NCBI GenBank assembly: GCA_900088475.1
Contig: FLMG01000016.1
Coordinates: 24,304 to 88,303, forward strand
Length of the DNA: 64,000 bases
Direction: 5' to 3'
DNA from: Hyphochytrium catenoides
Lineage: Eukaryota; Protista; Hyphochytriomycota
Positions 46,532 through 64,000 of this stretch are shown one piece after another (positions within the stretch are counted from its first letter, which is position 1; each line of letters begins with the position of its first letter). A model generated the notes under the pieces. The model was not told the DNA's origin. It did no database searches and saw nothing but the letters and a program-made list of their open reading frames with translations. The position numbers were made by a program, and so were the translations under genes.

Positions 46532-49138
46532 ATGGCACGGTGGGGTGTTATTGTCCTTCTGCTTGTGGGTGCTCTCTCTCAGATCTGTACTTCGTATGGC
46601 TCCCGGTTCTCACTTAGCGAGCTCGCGGACTTCAAGAGCGAAGCTCGCGGCATGTTCTATCATGCGTACAACAGCTACAAGGAGCATGCATTTCCTTGGG
46701 ACGAGCTCAGGCCGCTGTCCTGCCGAGAGAGAAGGTGGGACAAGAGAGAGCGAGGCCACATGGACGACTCGCTGGGAGGGTTCTCTCTCACACTCATTGA
46801 CTCCTTACCTTCTCTCGCGGTTCTTGCTGACAAGAAGGAGTTTAGCTGGGCGGTCAATTGGGTGATAAACAATATCTCTTTCGATAGAGATGTCGAGGTC
46901 TCGGTTTTCGAAGTGACAATCCGAGTTTTGGGCGGCTTATTGTCTGCACACCAGCTGGCTATGGATCCGAGTTTGAAGCTAATGGACGATTATGATGGCG
47001 GTCTATTGAGACTAGCTCGGGATTTGGGAGAAAGACTTCTGCCTAGCTTTCAGACTCCTACTGGGATCCCTAAGCACAGAGTGAATCTAAAATATGGGAT
47101 GATCCCAGGAGAAACAAATGAAGCTTGCACAGCGGGTGCCACAACCCTTCTTCTAGAGTTTGGTGTCCTTTCCCGACTGACCGGGAATCCCGATTTCGAG
47201 CGGGCAGCAGGACGAGCAGTAAAGGAGATCTGGAGCCGAAGGTCTCAGCATGATCTCGTGGGAGGATCCATTGATACAGCTACGGGTAACTGGCTAAACA
47301 CAGCTACAACCATTGGAGCGGGCATCGATTCCTTCTATGAATATCTGCTGAAGAGCTACATTCTCTTTGGAGACAATGAGTGGTATGAGATGTTCAATTC
47401 CTCTTACCATGCTGTACAAAAGCACCTTAGATTAGGAGACTGGCATGTTCAGGTGGATATGCACGGAGGCAAGGAGTCCGTTCGCGCGTACCACGTTTCT
47501 TCCTTGCAGGCCTTTTGGCCAGGGCTGCAGGTGTTGGCTGGGGACATTCTTGGCGCGTCATTGACGCACAACAGTCTGCTCTCCCTTTGGAAACGATTCG
47601 ACGGTCTTCCCGAACTTTATGACTTGCACAGCAAAGAGATTATTGATTGGGCAAAGGTCTATCCCCTTCGTCCAGAACTGCTGGAGAGCACCTACCACTT
47701 GTATGAAGCCACAAAGAATGACTTCTACGTTGAGGTAGCTGTAGACATGATGAAGACTATTATTTCGACCAGCAAAGTGCAGTGTGGTTACGCAGCCGTC
47801 CAAGACGTCCTGACGCGAAAGCTTGAGGATCGTATGGACAGCTTCTTCCTCTCTGAGACTGTCAAGTACCTCTATCTCATCTTCCATTCTGCGCTGGAGC
47901 ATCTGGAGCATCAACAGTCACTCTCCACTAGCCTTTGGCCTTTGTCTTCAAGAGATGCATTCACTGGGCTGAATTCAGACACGTTGCGCCATCCGAACAC
48001 AAGCAGGTCACCCTTGTCAAGACTGGTCTCAAAAGCGGTATTTACCACGGAAGGTCACATCTTGCTACCATCAGCTATACCCAGAGGATCTGATTGGCTG
48101 CATGGTAACACAAGCCAGGCGATGCCTTCTCCAGAACAAGAGTTGAAGAGGCAATGCCTACATGCAGACGGGCGTGTACAGGTATTCAAGGTGCTTTCCA
48201 GCTACTTTACCTAGTCTAGGCCTATCCTTGTATTTAATGTATTGTTCCATACTCGCCTTTGCTTTTGCCATATGTGTCCAGAAGCAACATCGTGGAATCT
48301 CTGCGAGCCGAAAGCAATATAAAAGACCAGAAGGACCGAAGAGGACGAAAGCCAAAGGAAGAAAAGGCAAAATTGGACCAGCTAAGGTCCATATCGCAAT
48401 CATGCCTCCGAAGAATGACTTCATTCACAAAGTCTTTATGGACGACGGCGGCCGGCCGTCCTACGACTTTTCACAGAGACAACGACGTATGTTAGAGAGA
48501 GTAACCACCGAGGGCATCAACTCAGCTTTCGGGCCCCAATTTAGTGAGGGAAGAGAGGAACTGAGCGGTGTATTGGCCATTGTGGGAAGGCCGTCCCGTA
48601 GATCCGCCCTGGCATGTGACAAGGTGACAGAGGTATGAATCTCGATGTAGGGCATTCCTTAAGAGGTTCCTAACTGCTCCCGTAACTCTAGGATCTGAAT
48701 GGCACCATTGCGTTGGTTCAGAGGGGTCACTGCACTTTTGTAATGAAGGCTAGGAACGTTCAGGAGGCTGGCGGCATAGGCCTTATCGTGGCAGATAATG
48801 GAGAGGGCGACTTTGAAGAAGGAAGCGTCCTTCAAGACGATGGTTCAGGTCACGACATAAGCATCCCGACTACTATGATCCCCTACAACAGTGCCCGAAT
48901 GCTTAGGAAGAGGTTACAGAGAAGCGCACTTGCCGTCCATATCAGTATATGGAGCAAGCCATTCAAAAGCAGGCCAGAGTCAACTAAGCCTGCACAGCTA
49001 CAGCTCGGAGCCATTGCAAGCGTGGGTTCGTTCCTGGCTTCGCTGCAGAACTTTCTGAATGCAGCTGAGAGTTCTTCAAAGGAGAGCTTAGTCGCGGAGG
49101 GGAAGCCAACAGAGACAGCTGTCGTAAATCCCCTATAA
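46532..49138 (+). CDS. EDEM: ER degradation-enhancing alpha-mannosidase-like protein (GH47 + PA domain, EDEM3-like architecture)
   Basis: Signal peptide; MFYHAYNSYKEHAFPWDELRPLSC, SVFEVTIRVLGGLLSAH, GAGIDSFYEYLLK, YPLRPELLEST, EDRMDSFFLSETVKYLYL, FTTEGH; PA domain ALVQRGHCTFVMKARNVQEAGGIGLIVADN. Confidence 0.95.
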
Positions 49139-49820: not shown

Positions 49821-52800
49821 GGAAGGAGCTGCAAACCCGATAGATGGGCACCGACCAAGGAAGGAGATTGCCCTCTGCCTGCGCTTGAAAGCCCAAGGAA
49901 GAGCGAGGGAACGGAGCTACCGGTAGCGATGCAGTGCATGAGGAAACACCTTGACCTTATGGCTTCTTCCCTCGTTGGGCCGACGCACAAGCGAGGAAGA
50001 GGCACTTCCAATGGTGGCAGGGATAGAAGGCGGCGAATGAGAAGCCGAGCTGATGACAAAGCCCGCTCAAGGGACCATGCACTGGCTTCAGAAGAGTGGA
50101 GGGAGGTAAACAGGAGAGAGGTTTATGAGTGGCTTGGGGACGCGGTGCTGTCAGAGGTTGTGTGTCGCCTTCTCATTGAGGCATCAACCTGTAAGCACGG
50201 TAGACTGTCTATAAGGTACCCCTACTAGTCTCGACTATGGCTTCTACTCCTGCTTTCTACCACGGCTCTCGCTTTTCCCCGTGCTCAGTCGTCCTGCTCT
50301 TTCTTCCTCTCTTGGTCCTAGGTCGATACTGCCGGTCTCATACTTCAAGCTTCTACTAGAGCGAATCCTTGAAAATGACCACCTAGCTGACTCACTCTTC
50401 CACCTGCACAACGGACTTGCCATTGACCTAGAACTGCAGGGTCACTCCCAAAAAGTGAAGGTGCGCTAAGCTGTGGACCCGTATTGTTCCTCTTTCTTCC
50501 AGCGTCGCGCTTCTAATAGCCAATCTAGACCTCACGAGCTTTTTGTCCTAGCAGTAGCCCTTCTAAGTACGATCCGCATCGCTTCTGTCTATCTTGCTTC
50601 AGCTCTCAGATGGGACAAATGTGCATTCTTATAGGATAGTCTGCCTTCTACACAGCCATTTTGTTCCTTGGGCATCACTTCATTATCTTTTTCCTTGGCA
50701 AACCTTTGTCTCCCCAGGCGGACTTGGTGGAAGCTACGGCCGGAAGACTAGCCCACCTATCTTACCTGCATCCACAGTCCTCACAATATTCAGCAGCCCT
50801 CGACGCCATTCTCTCTAGGGTCCTCCGAGCCCAGGAGAAGTTCTACTCCTCACTCTTGGACGCTGAGACGCTAGGAGACGGGCTTCTCAGTGTGGGCAGT
50901 GCCCTTTCTCCTCATGCACTCTCCGCATTAGACTCCTTCTGCTTATGTTGCGACTGTACGGAAGAGCCTCAACAAGAAGAAGAGGAAGGGCCAGTTGGGC
51001 TAGACGAGAGCAGTGATGTCGGCAAAGAGTTGCAGTCACTCAGAGGCAGGTTGAATACTTGCTTAAGAGCACATTGTGGGTCTTGTGTGAGACATGTGGA
51101 CGAGACACCTGACTGCAAACTGACGGCTTTCTTATACCTCAAGCAGTATGGACTCAGTCTGAGCACAGGCAAGTGACTCTTTAGAGGTTGTCGCTTTTCT
51201 CGAAGCTCTATCTGTTCTGCCAATCTTCCTTCCCTTCTCTGTGCTACTCACCCTGTCGGCTATCGAATGTTTCGTTATAACTTGTCTTCTGGGTCTAAGT
51301 CGAACCATCTTCTTTGCTGGCCAGAAAGGATAAGTTCCTTCATCTTTGGCTCTCAAGGATCACAGATGACACCCGCTGTGCTCACTAAGACAAGGCAGCA
51401 ACTTCTTTCTCTAAGTACATTAGAAACGGTGGCGACGATACTAGGTCTTGAAAGTCATCGATGGGCCATGAGGAATGAAAGTGAGCACGGTCGTGAGGAG
51501 GGGCTGCCGAACCCAGAAAGCTGCTCGGAGACCTCTCGGATAGCCTTCGGTCCCGATCTTCTCAGGGCAGGGTTGGCGTCCCTGCAACTCTCGGGACGCG
51601 GTGGCGATGTCGACACCATCTGCGCCTTGATTGCTTATATAGGACAGAACAACAAGCTTGACGCTACAACCTCTTCACTTTGTCTCTGGAAAGAAGAAGG
51701 ATTTGCCCACTTCAGAGAGAATAAGTGGTTGAAGGGAAAACGGGGCTTCTCCTTTCTCTCCCCTCTAACGAAGTCTGCGGTGTGCAGCCTCCAGACCTTA
51801 CAAGCAACCTTTGACTATTATGCAAACAATAAGGAGTTCCGTATGGGCGTCCTACGCTCTAGGGATTCGTCCCACCGTCCCTCTTGTCCAAATTGTGCCG
51901 ATGAGATACGGAAGAGGACAGATACCGGGGACAGAGGCGATTGCCAACAGTCGAGCAAGAGTAAGGAGACGAGGAAGAGGAAGAGATCACTATCAGGTAA
52001 CTAAGTTGGCCAGAAGGTCTGTTGCTTTTTGGCAGCTTTTCCTATTGCCTGTCCCTGTGCCTCCTGATCTGACTCAAACTTGCACCGGGGATGGTCAGGT
52101 TAGTTGTGTTAAGGTTTTTGCCGATGACTCTTGGCCTCAGTGACTATGTCGTCAAGCTAGACTAGTTATAGTCGCTCTTAAATCACCTGTTATGCAGACT
52201 CCAGCCGACACGGAAAAGGACAGACAGGGGATCATTTATTGAAGGCTTCACGGTTTTCAAGAATCCGAAAGCCAACGAGACAAGCCATGGTGCGAATGGC
52301 AGAAAGCGAGCTGCTGAGCTTCATAGAAACCTCGATCCTCTTGGCCCTGAAGGTGAATCGACCGCACCGTTCCGTGCATCTACTTTGACCTGACCAGCAC
52401 ATTACTTCCTTCTGGCCTCCGTATGTCCTGGACAGACTGTTCGGCAACAGGAGCAGATTGAGCCACAGGATCTTCTCCTCACACTTCGAGGTCTACCCGG
52501 GTTTCTGGACGACTATGAGAAACTTACCATCTCATCTGAGGGAACAGGGGACATGAAGATGATGATTCCCCTATCAGACCCCTTCTACCGTCTCTTGCTT
52601 CATGGGCTCTGCGAATTCCATGGCCTTCTCTCTTCAAGTACGTCCGTTGGATGTTGAAGTGGGCCGTAAGGCTGTCAGGAATGTCTCCTCCTTCGTTTGC
52701 CCCTTCCGTTTCGTTCCCTTCTTCTATCGTGCAGCGCTAATGCTGTCTCATCGCAGGTCTAGCAGAGGGTAACCCGGGAAAAGTGGTGGAGATCACACTG

Positions 52801-52875
52801 CCTAAGGCTATTGCGTCAGCTGACGGTGAACCCTTCAAAGACTTCATCTTAAGCTATGACGGAGCTTGTCATTAA
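49821..52875 (+). CDS. RNase III-domain protein with degenerate second RNase III-like region and C-terminal R3H module (spliced fusion); 5' start uncertain (in-frame ATG at 49929)
   Basis: REVYEWLGDAVL and KVK|ADLVEATAG (RNase III); TPAVLTKTRQQLLSLSTLETVATILGL (RNase III-like helices); PFYRLLLHGLCEFHGLLSSS (R-x3-H). Exons 49821-50215, 50322-50460, 50718-51168, 51358-51996, 52198-52352, 52451-52637, 52757-52875 are all phase-compatible. Confidence 0.78.
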
Positions 52876-53494: not shown

Positions 53495-55044
53495 TTACTT
53501 CTTGGAGGGCTTCTTTGCAGCGGTCTTGGCCTTAGGAGCATCCTTAGGCTTCTCTGCCTCCTTCTTAGGAGCATCCTTCTTGGGCTTGGTCTCCTTCTTG
53601 CCCTCTGCCGCCTGGTACTCAGCCTCACGCTGGAGGCGCTGAGCCTCAGCGCGAGCTGCACGGCGCTCGGTCTTGTTCTTAGCCCTGAAGGTTAATAGAT
53701 AACAATAACGCAAGAACAAGACAGGCAATACACGAAGCAAAGTCAGCGGACTGCGTCTTAAGAGGACTGTAAAGTAGCGACGTACTTCTCCTTGCGGGCC
53801 TCAGCCTGCTCGTTGAGAGCCTTCTCACGTGCCTTCTCAGCCTTCATCTTATGGATGGTCTCCATAAGTACACGCTGTCACGGAGAAGGTTATTGGCATC
53901 ACGTCTTTACCCTCCTCAGTAGTAAGTAAGACATTCTTACCTTGTTTCTGAACTGGTTACCCTTAACGGACATGTACAGCTGATGGTAAAGATGCTTGTC
54001 GATCTTCTTGGCATCACGGTACTTCCGGAGCAGACGGCGGAGAACACGCATACGCCTCATCCAGATAACCTAGTTAGATCACGGTCAGCACGAAGGTAAA
54101 TTCTAAACTTATGTGGCTTCTAAAAAAAAAGAATATGGGGATAATGACAAGCAAGAAAGTGGAGGTTGTCGTCTGGTGTTTAGTAGAGGACTTCAGTGGA
54201 TAGCTGAGGTTCTCTGTGGAGACAGAACCCGGTTGTCTGGCCGGCGCCAAGTAGCTTGGCGGTTCGTATAGGCGATGAAGAGGGCACTCTATCGTCACAC
54301 TCTAGACCTTTCGGTCTAGAGCATTAAAAGCGCGCTTAAGGTTCATACGCCATCAATAGGAAGAGCATAGTGGAGCACAGCTTTTGCTAGTACGCGATTA
54401 GGGAAGAAGCTATTGGATAAAATTGCATGTTTACCTTGAAAGGAAGTCTGGCGTTGGCAGTACCGCGTCTCTTACCGACGCCAGTGTGACGGCCCTTGCG
54501 CTTGGCCTCATTTCTTCTGGTGAAGCGAGCGCGAGAGTGGATTACCGCAGGCTTGCGGATGACAAGACCATCCTATATGGGAGAAGAAACAAATAAGCTC
54601 CCTTGAACAAACATCTATGGGCACGCCTAGGAAATCCAAGCATCTGTGACAAGATGTACCTTGACCAGCTTGCGGATGTTCTGGCGAGAGTTTGCCAGAG
54701 CGATCTCGTTGACCTCATTAGGGTCCAACCAGATCTTTCGCTTACCGCACTTGAGTACGGAAGCTGCAAGACTGTAAAAGAAGAGGAAAGAATTAGCACT
54801 AATGGACAAGAAGCTCCTGTTCATAGCTGCTGAAGCCACTCATTAGCTCTTCCGGTAGGACGGGAGAGTACGCTAGTGCTTTCTAAACCGAAACGCTCTC
54901 GAACCTCACGAATCAAGCTCAACCAGTATTTCCCCTGCCCAACCGAGCTCCTTCACATCATTTAAGCTCCCCCGCCATCAAAGCTACCTACTTGGGGCCT
55001 TTCACAGTCTCCACTTACCGCTTCTGAAGCCTCAAAGACACCAT
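53495..55044 (-). CDS. RPL19: 60S ribosomal protein L19 (eL19), multi-exon
   Basis: MVSLRLQKR|[105 protein letters not shown]. Confidence 0.99.
54190..54360 (-). ncRNA. Putative intronic structured RNA (box C/D snoRNA-like) in RPL19 intron 54070-54434
   Basis: Several hairpins including CTCTAGACC-GAAA-GGTCTAGAG; CTGA preceded by TCAGCTATCC, complementary to LSU rRNA GGATAGCTG; imperfect box C candidates GTGACGA and TTGATGG. Confidence 0.55.
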
Positions 55045-59500: not shown

Positions 59501-60123
59501 GGCAATAGAGTACTACCTGTCCCATAGGGTAGAGATTGTTTACAAAGATGCAGAAGGGCCGAACAGGCACTGCATCCGGCCCCTCAGGCGCTCCGAAGCT
59601 GGCTGCCGACCAAACTCTTAGCTTGCGGACGACGACTTGCCAGATCTCGTTCTTTGTCTGTGGCAAGCGTCGTAACTTCTCCTTCAGCTCCGGTGCTAGG
59701 TGGTTTACATCCTGGATCTCCACTGACGGATAGAGAAAGGGCCCATCGATAATGTCAGAAGTGGTTACATGATAGACAAACGGGATGCAAAGGGTAACGT
59801 GCAACAGGTGAAAACAATAGTAGGAGAAAAACAGGAGCAGGCAAGGTTGGCCGGTGAGGTATCTGGAGGTCAGCAGAGTGGGCTGCAAGCCCCACGTCCT
59901 CCTACTTAAGCGGCAGTTCTCTCTCCCAGCCTTCCCACTACCTGCGCCTCCTATTTGTCATTGAGGCAATCCTATCTTACCATCCACAATAGGTCACCCC
60001 TCTCCTCGCCTCCTAGCTGAGCACCCTTCTCTCTTCATATCACCAACCTCACCTTTCTCATGTCCGAGCTCATACGTGGTCGGCTTGCGCGCAATGATTT
60101 TCTCCCGCTCCTCGTCGCTATCC
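56541..60123 (-). CDS. zf-MYND-containing protein with bacterial-type DUF7309/DUF6930-like flanking region; 5' end uncertain
   Basis: Spliced peptide R|CNFTRKSMQETKEKLKRCTRCKSVFYVDQEAQ|RQDWPTHKKFC (MYND-like); LYSTAARYRQREPWKQLLERQGIEMEV and LSVLGAGGGGKGLGLF; NEIWQVVVRKLRVW. Confidence 0.7.
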
Positions 60124-60620
60124 TAAGAGAACATGTAACGGTAAATGCACAAGGCAAGCTGCTGATGTGCCTGCTATGTCTCTCTCTCCACCAAGCCTTA
60201 CCCAGAGGATTCTGATGTCTATCCTTCTCTGCACCTTACTCTCTGGTACCGCCTTTTGCGGTCTCCCTCGTAGGTGGGGAGACCTCTCACTTGCCTCTTC
60301 CCTTGTCCCTTTGTGGTACCTTCTCTTCCCCTTCTACCTGTCAGGCTCAATACTAGCTCATGGACTCAGATCCCGACCCAGTTCTCACGCCATTTCTTGT
60401 TTCCAGAGCAAGCATTCTCATGCTTAGTCCCTCAAATTTTCCTGCCAACTCACATCAAAATTATCCCACTTCTTATACTTCTGCGTCAGGGAGTTCTGCG
60501 CCATCGTCTCCCCCAGCACCTAGAAAAGAAGGACGGTCCCAAGGACTCTGTGGCGTCACCAAGAGAAAGTTGCTTGAGAAGCGCTGCTTCCTTCGGTGTG
60601 AGATCTCCCCTTTCACTCTC

Positions 60621-60679
60621 CTCTGCTGTGCTCCCTGGGCGCTTCCTTCTCTCTGCCGTGCTCCCTGGGCACTTCCTTC
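60621..60679. repeat. 30-bp tandem repeat, 2 copies
   Basis: ctctgctgtgctccctgggcgcttccttc / ctctgccgtgctccctgggcacttccttc. Confidence 0.9.
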
Positions 60680-61174
60680 GTTAGCTATCTCTGTACCGCT
60701 GCACTGCCGCTAGGAAAATGACGGAGGAACGGGAGGAGGAAGGGCGAAACGCCGCCGGGCCTAGACTGAAGATGCATCAGAAGCAGCGGCACTAAGTTCC
60801 TTCGTTGTGTGTCTTTCTCCAGGCTACTCAATGCTTCTCAATCTCATTCTGTCTGAAGTGTTTCTCCTCATGTTGCTTCTGGTACAATCTTATCTCTCGC
60901 TTTCTCTCTTTTGGTTGGTTCTTCACTCTGTCTCGGCTCCTGCTTGTCTACTTCCTTATGAACCTTTTTCTCAACTTTCAGAATCACATAACCCTGCGTC
61001 CAGCCTCAGTTATCAAAGAGTAGATTATCCTAAGAATCTGTTTCTTAGTCTTTTGAATCAGGCTGACAACCGTTTTATCGCTTTCTAGTGTCTTGCTCCT
61101 TGGTCTTCTTCCTCCTCCTCCTCCTCCTTGGCGCTGCTGCTGCTGCTGCTGCCGCTGAGACTTTCCTCATTGGT

Positions 61175-61183
61175 TCTCTCTCT

Positions 61184-61233
<50 letters not shown>

Positions 61234-61760
61234 TTCTCTCTCTCTCCCTCTATCGTTCTACTGTCACCCGCAAGCCCTCTCCCAGATTTCCTCTGTAGTG
61301 TCTCTTCTAAACCTTTTCTGCCTGATGACTCTCTCTTCTCTCTCTGTCTCTCTCTCTCGCTCGCTCTCTCTCTCTCGCTCTCGCTCTCTCTCTCTCGCTC
61401 GCTCTCGCTCTCTCTCTCGCTCTCTCTCGCTCTCTCTCGCTCTATCGTTCTACTGTCACCCGCAAGCCCTCTCCCAGATTTCCTCTGTAGTGTCTCTTCT
61501 AAACCTTCTCTGCCTGATGACTCTCTCTTCTCTCTCTGTCTCTCTCTCTCGCTCGCTCTCTCTCTCTCGCTCTCGCTCTCTCTCTCGCTCTCTCTCGCTC
61601 GCTCTCGCTCTCTCTCTCGCTCGCTCTCGCTCTCTCTCTCGCTCTCTCTCGCTCTCTCTCGCTCTCTCGCTCTCTCGCTCTCTCGCTCTCGCTCTCTCTC
61701 TCGCTCTCGCTCTTTCTCTCGCTCTCGCTCTTTCTCGCTCTCTCTCTCTCGCTCTCTCCT
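61175..61760. repeat. (CT)n/(CTCG)n microsatellite field containing a 192-bp-period direct duplication
   Basis: Unique core ctctatcgttctactgtcacccgcaagccctctcccagattt... at 61248 and again at 61440, embedded in ct/ctcg arrays. Confidence 0.93.
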
Positions 61761-62429
61761 TTTTTCCTTCTTTCCTTTCCTCTCCCTTGACCACTACCTC
61801 TTCTTCTAAGCTCTTCTTCGCCCTCCTCCCCGTCGTCTTTCTCCGTCCTTATTCTTCTCTGCCGCTTCAAAATCACTCTTTCTGATCGCCTTCTCTTTCA
61901 CTTGTCCATCCTCCTAATCTTCTTCTTCCGCTTCCAACTTCCTTCTCCTCCCACCTGGGCACGCATGACCGTCTCTTTCTCCTTTTGTGACAACCCAGTC
62001 TCCTGTCTCCTCCAAGTAGCTGCCCGGTGGCTGCCCCCTTCTCTGTCTGTCTCTCTCTATGTCTGTCTGTCTCTCCCTGTGTCTGTCTGTCTGCGTGCCT
62101 CTCTTCTCGGTGTTGTTCGGTCTCTCTCTCTCCGCTTTCTCTCTCTCTCCGCTTTTTCTCTCTCTCTCTAAGCAAGGGATCCATCCCCATCATCCTGCCT
62201 CCTGTCCTACCTCCTCCTTGCTCATTTCCTCACCGCTATTTATTTGATGCTTCTTGTTTTCCTTAGTCTCTCGTGCTTGCCTGCCGCTTTTCCCTTCTAA
62301 CCTCGCCAACAATGAACATCCAGAAGCGACCACGAAGTAGATCCCAGTCATGACTAAGAGCTTGTCAGAGAATAGCTTCGGCAGCTCGACCGTTCTCTAT
62401 TTGTCTTCTTCTTCTGAGAGCCTGACACG

Positions 62430-63230
62430 ATGACTGCTGAAGCTCAAGTGGAACCTTGTGGAGAGGGAGAGGACAAGGACGAGCCCTCTGTTCTTGCTCT
62501 TGCCGCAGGAGGAGGCGGTAGAGGAGAGGACAAGATGAGAGAAGAGGAAGAGATCTCCCGCCTCCTTCTGCGCATTGCCTCTTACATCGTTGCCCCAAAG
62601 CCAGACTGGGAGGAAAACAGGCTGGATCCTCTTCTCGCCGATGCTTCTCTGGCTGCTTCCTCTCTCCTTGCCTATGCGGAGAGCGTCTCGGGAGCGAGGA
62701 CGATTGTAGAAAGGGGAGGCGCAGCTGCCCTGTTGCCTCTCCTCGGCGGGCATGGGAGAATCTTGGAGGAGGCCGCCATGAAGGTGTTGGCGACAGTGGC
62801 GGAGATGGCTGAAGATTGCGCTGCGGCGCTGCTGAGGTATAAGCTCCTCACCAGTCCGAGGTCCTTGTTCCATGCCTTTCCTATGTTTGCCTCTCTCTCG
62901 CTGCTCATCTCTTCTCCCTCTCTCTCTCTCTCTCCCACCTCTGTCTCTTTTAGCTCTCTCTCTCTCTCTCTTCCTTATCTCTTTCTCTCTTTCTGCCTCT
63001 TAGCTCTCTGTCTCTCTTTCTGCGCTGTCTTTTTGCACTTCCTCTAAGTCGTTCTTGTTCTCTAGGGCAGGAGCTCTTTCTCGAATCCTAACTATCTTAG
63101 AGGACCAGCTGGGTCTTGAGGAGCCAAAGCCAGAGAAAGTGCAAGAGTCTAAGCTCTCTCACAAGGTGAAAGTGAAGGTGACAAAGTCGTAAACTGAAGA
63201 CAGAGAACACGCTATGGGGTCTAACTTCGT

Positions 63231-63278
<48 letters not shown>

Positions 63279-64000
63279 TTTTCTCCTCTGTCTCTCTCTT
63301 TTTCTCCTCTCTCTTTCTCCCTCCCTCTCCCCTCGCACCCATCCGTCCATCTATGGCTTCCAATGTGTTACTTGTTGCTCCCTCTCTCTCTAGCCCGGAT
63401 GGCCGGAAAGCATCCATCTGCTGTCCAGTCTCCTGCGCTGGGCAACCTCATACGACGCGATGACTGAGAGCTGCGGCAGAATCTTAAGAGTAGCTCTAAC
63501 CCTTTGTAAACCCACTTCTTCTCTCCCAGAAGGAGCTCTGGAGTTCAGAGGAAGGACAGCAACAGAAGAGGAGAGAGGTCTGTGCCTCTCGTTCTCTTCC
63601 TCTTGTCAGCGCTTCATCTCTCGTGCTCTGTTTCCTTCCTCTTGGCTCTTCGCTCGTGAACTTTGCTGATCCGTTCTGCAGCCTAGGAGAGCTGTGGGCG
63701 TTCAGCTTACCTCGCAGCTCTCTGTCTCTCTGCCACAGGCTCACTTTCTCATTCTCTCTCTGCACACTTTCTCTCTCTCTCACTTTTTCTCTCTTTCTGT
63801 CACAAACAACACTTTCTTCTTCTCTCTGTGTGTATATATAATGCCTGTTCTGGACTCACCGCCAGCTTTCTTTTCTCTCCTTGGCTGTTTCGTTTTTAGT
63901 CGTTGCTCCCGCTCTTCAAACTCTTCTTTACTTGTCCTCTTATGCCTTTCTTCGCTTGCTTGCAGATCAACTGGAGTGGCTCAATCTCTCTCTCTCTCTC
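62430..64000 (+). CDS. ARM/HEAT-repeat-like protein, 5' part, continuing beyond window; CT-rich introns
   Basis: RTIVERGGAAALLPLL..EAAMKVLATVAE..CAAALLR|AGALSRILTIL (armadillo-like). Exons at 62430-62836, 63066-63165, 63393-about 63577. Confidence 0.6.

Follow-up and report, generated by a model that had tools for sequence, protein, structure and literature searches.

The class 1 members of the RNase III family (bacterial Rnc, yeast Rnt1) and Mini-III have in common an E..E.LGD signature and an AD..EA..G motif, which supply four metal-binding catalytic acids (E40, D44, D107 and E110 in the Aquifex numbering); substrate recognition in the family normally proceeds via a double-stranded RNA-binding domain (dsRBD) or a PAZ domain. 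Dicer and Drosha carry two RNase III domains that pair inside one polypeptide. Pairs of one live and one dead domain are formed by the kinetoplastid proteins KREN1-3 with their degenerate KREPB partners and by heterodimers of wild-type and E117 mutant RNase III of E. coli, and in plant RNC1, an RNA-binding splicing factor, both of the two RNase III domains are inactive. Here we describe a predicted gene from a window of 64,000 nucleotides of the genome of the stramenopile protist Hyphochytrium catenoides (the whole stretch analyzed, contig FLMG01000016.1, positions 24,304 to 88,303 of the forward strand, assembly GCA_900088475.1). The gene lies at 49929-52875 on the plus strand (all positions are those of the window), and its product may combine a live RNase III domain, a degenerate RNase III-like region and a C-terminal R3H domain. 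In our favored reading, to which we give a probability of about 0.5, the gene is a real, lineage-specific one of the nuclear genome and codes for a highly divergent member of the RNase III family; its RNase III-like domains are putatively paired, and a predicted splice, that of intron 4, joins the RNase III and R3H parts.

The first RNase III domain (domain 1) is encoded by exons 1 to 3. Exon 1 (49929-50215) opens with an ATG, encodes an Arg-rich basic N-terminus and contains EVYEWLGDAVL at 50118 (EVYEWLGD, 50118-50141), and exon 3 (50718-51168) begins with ADLVEATAG (50718-50744). Both motifs are in frame on the plus strand, each is unique when the window is translated in all six frames, and they are separated by about 73 residues through exon 2, where about 60-75 are expected for the family. 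All four catalytic acids are present, as the first-pass annotation of this stretch had claimed for the first domain. The same annotation began the gene at 49821, where the frame does open, but the start codon is the ATG at 49929, the first one available.

All searches and structure predictions were run on single exons, one at a time, and this scope bears directly on the profile scores. In Pfam, the sole match of exon 1 is Ribonuclease_3 (PF00636; 15.1 bits, library-wide E=0.042), which aligns residues 64-94 with model positions 1-32; this best single-exon score for the family falls under the gathering threshold of 27 bits because just 31 residues of the 102-position model are covered. Against a local profile built from 12 bacterial RNase III genes, exon 1 scores 13.7-16 bits, a level reached by 0 of 1000 shuffles, and an hhalign comparison with the RNase III domains encoded elsewhere in the same genome yields E=2.5e-4. 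A search of PDB sequences with exon 1, like that with exon 6, produced nothing meaningful. Exon 2 (50322-50460; ENDHLADSL...GL; entered in phase 2 and left in phase 0) is assigned to the mid-section of the domain because the two catalytic motifs have to be a certain distance apart, and ADLVEATAG goes unscored by the profile on account of its place at the edge of the searched piece. Neither exon 2, the weakest part of the domain, nor the opening of exon 3 scores by itself against a profile, and this counts against our interpretation. Taken together, motifs, spacing and profile scores support a predicted live RNase III domain at the N-terminus.

Downstream of this domain, three blocks follow in the canonical order of an RNase III domain, namely ETLGD, LTKTR...LGL and PDLLRA. 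The first-pass annotation had recognized RNase III helices here and considered the region to be devoid of the acidic signature. The helix blocks stand, but the statement on the signature does not: apart from the domain 1 signature, the six frames of the 64-kb window contain a single E.LGD, that of ETLGDGLLS (50865-50891, in frame in exon 3), and the Smith-Waterman alignment of ETLGDGLLS with the domain 1 signature has p ~0.05. The other two blocks are in exon 4 (51358-51996), which encodes PAVLTKTRQQLLSLSTLETVATILGL at 51372-51449 (LTKTR...LGL, 51381-51449), then PDLLRAGLASL (51552-51584) and, finally, a basic tail of about 110 residues rich in Ser, Lys and Arg. PDLLRAGLASL fits the AD..EA..G helix with the Asp kept and the final Glu changed to Arg. 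As aligned, the putative second site retains three of the four acids, the one exception being the last catalytic Glu. A Glu-to-basic change of the same kind, E117K in E. coli rnc70, keeps RNA binding and loses cutting.

How much weight these blocks can bear depends on the alignments of exon 4. Residues 8-43 fall on columns 74-109 of the bacterial profile, as expected for this part of the domain (6.7-7.5 bits; E=3e-4 for one comparison; 0/1000 shuffles as high), the register found by hhalign agrees with the profile alignment, the predicted helices coincide with the blocks, and the Atlas feature matches lean to RNase III clusters at 0.78, a value of use as a lead only. Several observations pull in the opposite direction. 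Neither exon 3 nor exon 4 has an RNase III match in Pfam; the hhalign probability for exon 4 is 1.2%; the search of PDB sequences with this exon returned a chance match to eIF4E only (E=1.5); the AlphaFold model of exon 4 alone has a predicted local distance difference test score (pLDDT) of 33 and is unusable; no internal duplication between the two domains is detectable beyond the signature motif; and about 95 residues separate ETLGD from the next block. All this could also be read to mean that the protein has one live RNase III domain only, in which case exons 3 and 4 would encode an unrelated helical or disordered spacer, with motifs that are there by chance or as relics, and the homodimer of domain 1 would cut both strands in the manner of class 1 RNase III or Mini-III. 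Such a spacer would, however, have to match exactly the right profile columns at a score that no shuffle attains, to present three blocks in canonical order that coincide with predicted helices, and to hold in frame the sole other E.LGD of the window; we consider it rather unlikely. A genuine degenerate RNase III domain encoded by exons 3 and 4 is the explanation towards which we lean, somewhat beyond even odds.

Between the ETLGD motif and the next RNase III-like helix, there is an insert rich in Cys and acidic residues (approximately 50937-51107; CLCCDC...EEEE...C..HC..C..H....C), without a Pfam match, which might bind zinc. Exon 3 ends shortly after this insert, at a GC donor (CAG|GCAAGT) that opens the predicted intron 3 (51169-51357); a weaker GT donor in the same phase is located 16 nt upstream and would make exon 3 five codons shorter.

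If the two RNase III-like domains are what they appear to be, the protein can be compared with each of the systems above. With class 1 RNases III and Mini-III, it shares the motifs that carry the catalytic acids, but lacks a dsRBD, scores under the gathering threshold in the exon-wise Pfam searches, and adds a degenerate RNase III-like region, the Cys/acid-rich insert and, possibly, the R3H domain. As in Dicer and Drosha, there are possibly two RNase III-like domains in one chain, and the large insert in the second one has a counterpart of a kind in the large insert of Dicer RIIIDa. Unlike Dicer and Drosha, the protein is devoid of PAZ, helicase, platform and dsRBD, and with Arg in place of the last Glu of the second site, it would have at most one live site. 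The absence of dsRBD, PAZ and helicase, noted already in the initial reading of the sequence, is borne out by the lack of any such Pfam match in any of the exons. Plant RNC1 likewise has tandem RNase III-like domains with lost catalytic residues; in the present protein, however, the acids of domain 1 are complete, and it is therefore expected to act as a nuclease. The analogy with KREN1-3/KREPB and the E. coli heterodimers is one of description: one active and one inactive site would likewise mean single-strand cleavage, whereas here both halves would reside in one polypeptide, with no zinc finger or PUF partner.

The mechanism may be envisaged as follows. Like those of Dicer and Drosha, the two RNase III-like domains would pair inside a single chain; since only one of the two sites would be live, a single strand of the duplex would be nicked; and the R3H domain would take over RNA binding from the missing dsRBD, recognizing single-stranded RNA beside the duplex.

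The R3H domain of the predicted protein is assigned to its last two exons. R3H domains are marked by an R-x-x-x-H motif inside a beta-alpha-beta core, with a G..+.V.V strand after it. Exons 6 (52436-52637) and 7 (52757-52875) encode FYRLLLHGLCEFHGLLSS, in which a pre-R3H helix and the R3H core with the R-x-x-x-H motif (RLLLH, 52589-52603) occupy exon 6 and the final strand, GKVVEITL, together with a C-terminal tail and the TAA stop codon, exon 7. The sole Pfam match of exon 6 is R3H (PF01424; 13.4-14.9 bits), under the cut-off of 26.8 bits because the domain is split between exons. Against a profile of R3H-assoc proteins, the same exon scores 34.2 bits (E=8e-13 for one comparison, 0/1000 shuffles). 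A family profile that yields 34.2 bits where the generic R3H model yields 13-15 points to the R3H-assoc (R3HDM4-type) subtype, and the assignment of exon 6 to this subtype is supported. Human R3HDM4 is itself a member of the Pfam R3H-assoc family (PF13902). Exon 7 has no significant score of its own and is assigned to the R3H domain by position, with a fitting phase.

A metagenome scan produced eight marine GC-rich loci, all from one family, with R3H cores 38-63% identical to exon 6; seven of these contain an intronless open reading frame (ORF) of about 500 amino acids, and one is a fragment. All four distinct full-length ORFs that were scanned match PF13902 at 66-76 bits. About 60 further family members were retrieved, all of which show PF13902 only. 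A more distant member (P0061), 345 amino acids long, is alone on 1.9-kb contigs, has a precomputed PF13902 assignment and is 43% identical to exon 6. With P0061 and the marine locus L030, the identity of exon 6 is 43-49%, and the features in common are the R3H core and the preceding helix; the comparison is with these family members. Four marine ORFs (L030:571-2076, L031:4819-6417, L033:4678-6234 and L036:3215-4636; about 500 residues, intronless, GC 0.6-0.69) share an unannotated module with invariant Cys residues (CxxCxC...RRWY...CPHCH.QNEQLW), which is joined to R3H-assoc and R3H. In those marine organisms, the R3H-assoc family has a different N-terminal partner.

The H. catenoides protein departs from this family in that the R3H-assoc core, RRRRRW.ND...PPPFG, is undetectable in the gene or the genome. 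PF13902 has no match in exons 4 or 5, and a search of the whole genome with this model, conducted without a positive control, gave no match either (the genome-wide scans covered the 61-Mb assembly of 4759 contigs). The C-terminal half of exon 4 is not significantly similar to the R3H-assoc family profile (p=0.38), and exon 5 (52198-52352), a basic linker, shows no significant similarity to anything. A region resembling R3HDM4 had been proposed at the outset for the C-terminal part; the R3H domain in exon 6 sustains that proposal, but its RFSRIRKPTRQAM portion, in exon 5, has no significant similarity, and PF13902 itself goes undetected. A motif in exon 5, RFSRIRK, was considered as a family motif from a by-eye alignment that we dropped, since the profile puts the conserved pre-R3H helix in exon 6. 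No paralogue of exon 6 was found in the genome. One further candidate for a separate R3H-assoc gene, an open frame at C1310:24263-24487 (L041), scored 24 bits against an algal protein, has no Pfam support and lies antisense to an IQ-motif gene; it is probably noise.

Whether the RNase III and R3H parts belong to one protein hinges on the junction between exons 4 and 5. The ORF of exon 4 ends at TAA 52002-52004, and a donor, CAG|GTAACT, after 51996 would join it in phase 1 to an acceptor, TTATGCAG|, before 52198; both the ORF end and the in-phase donor at 51996/51997 that bypasses it, as initially proposed, are present in the sequence. The predicted intron 4 (51997-52197, GTAACT...TGCAG) has good splice signals and, at 201 nt, differs little from the average H. 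catenoides intron, for which 208 nt has been published, with 3.64 introns per gene (PMC5795050), and its donor is of the GTA class that is also seen in the introns of the neighboring gene for ribosomal protein RPL19 (GTACAT, GTAAAC, GTAAGA and probably GTACGT). In frame 0, there are seven stop codons inside intron 4 and none past the acceptor.

The same stretch admits, as a possible if doubtful alternative, two genes: a 505-amino-acid RNase III protein terminated by TAA 52004 and a separate R3H protein of about 129 amino acids that would start at ATG 52287, the first ATG of exon 5, the in-phase splice signals being coincidental. Chance alone puts about one third of donor/acceptor pairs in phase, and several lines of evidence speak for separate genes and against a fusion. 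ATG 52287 is in a strong GCCATGG context. The junction 51996|52198 is predicted from sequence signals. The part of exon 5 that precedes the ATG is not significantly similar to the R3H-assoc family, as 882 of 1000 shuffles do equally well, and its codon usage is uninformative or slightly unfavorable, in a model that failed to separate exons from introns. All relatives found for the R3H part are without RNase III: none is detected in the marine kin with the bacterial RNase III profile, and among the R3H-region kin of 276-878 amino acids, no protein combines RNase III with R3H. Two genes would, however, leave only 283 nt, from stop 52004 to ATG 52287, for a 3′ untranslated region, a promoter and a 5′ untranslated region, in a neighborhood where the gaps to the flanking genes are 620-790 nt, and given an early transcription start, the leader would hold upstream ATGs at 52124, 52145 and 52193. 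Moreover, the frame is open from 52182, that is, right before a good acceptor, giving 35 open codons upstream of ATG 52287 (computed chance of about 0.19), and in every family member found, the R3H domain is preceded by a long N-terminal region. On balance, it seems probable that intron 4 is spliced out and that the predicted RNase III and R3H parts are fused.

The complete gene model comprises seven open exons with about 663 codons and junctions that are all in phase, as established by three-frame reading and a scripted phase check. The predicted introns are, in order, 106, 257, 189, 201, 83 and 119 nt long, with the donors GTACCC, GTGCGC, GCAAGT (the GC-AG intron), GTAACT, GTGAAT and GTACGT. 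This coherence across 663 codons, as well as the intact domain 1 acids (four of four) and R3H core motif, is difficult to reconcile with the idea of a relic that evolves fast, is decaying or unexpressed and has no current function, although the sequence is indeed very divergent and has no detectable exon 4 orthologues; we regard such a relic as very improbable.

The isolation of the gene nevertheless has to be set against our interpretation. No exon 4 homologue was found in a word-indexed search or in a HMMER search of 1.84e9 representative proteins; one candidate relative, P0001, was rejected as a spurious repeat protein. As exon 4 does not even match itself, the product of the gene is not in the collections searched, and with no relatives of this exon, there is no orthologue to confirm the gene model. 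In the genome-wide RNase III scan, the gene is too divergent to surface, and the at least seven other RNase III loci (C4108, C3463, C1710, C2397, C79, C4130 and C3427) are much more canonical. At least three of those have two RNase III domains each, resembling Dicer and Drosha, and four are single-domain loci, among which C2397 and C79 have degenerate signatures.

Upstream, on the plus strand, the neighboring gene ends at 49138 and encodes a GH47 mannosidase that also has a PA domain; downstream, on the minus strand, is the RPL19 gene, with its stop codon near 53495. An Rfam scan of the locus yielded a chance match to NEAT1_2 only, in intron 3 (51177-51293; 20 bits, E=0.5). Farther downstream, the segment at 60001-64000 of the window displays extreme strand asymmetry (GC skew -0.2 to -0.4, AT skew -0.35 to -0.47), and long open frames are present on both strands at about 61.1-63.0 kb.

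In the searchable full-text literature, we found no description of a protein that combines RNase III and R3H, and the supplements of the H. catenoides genome paper do not mention RNase III or R3H domains. The original suggestion that the architecture is undescribed thus stands as far as the fusion is real, and in that case the RNase III family gains a new variant. Human R3HDM4, named TLSD1 in a 2026 preprint, is reported there to be required for the degradation of 60S ribosomal subunits stuck at the endoplasmic reticulum, with no nuclease named (10.64898/2026.09.26.754687). A natural “Rosetta-stone” fusion of RNase III, with one live and one dead site, to an R3H domain of the R3HDM4/TLSD1 family would, if real, be a suggestive link: structured RNA, perhaps that of ribosomes, would be the predicted target on which R3HDM4-type proteins and an endonuclease work together; we offer this as a long shot. 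The value of the finding today is that of a lead, in which everything turns on one predicted splice, in a gene that is an orphan and comes from a protist that has been little studied. If it is true, a live/dead RNase III pair could have its cut aimed in a new way by an R3H tail that binds single strands, for example, to place a nick at a junction of single-stranded and double-stranded RNA, and the fusion would provide a testable hint as to which molecule the R3HDM4/TLSD1 family partners with when RNA or ribosomes decay.

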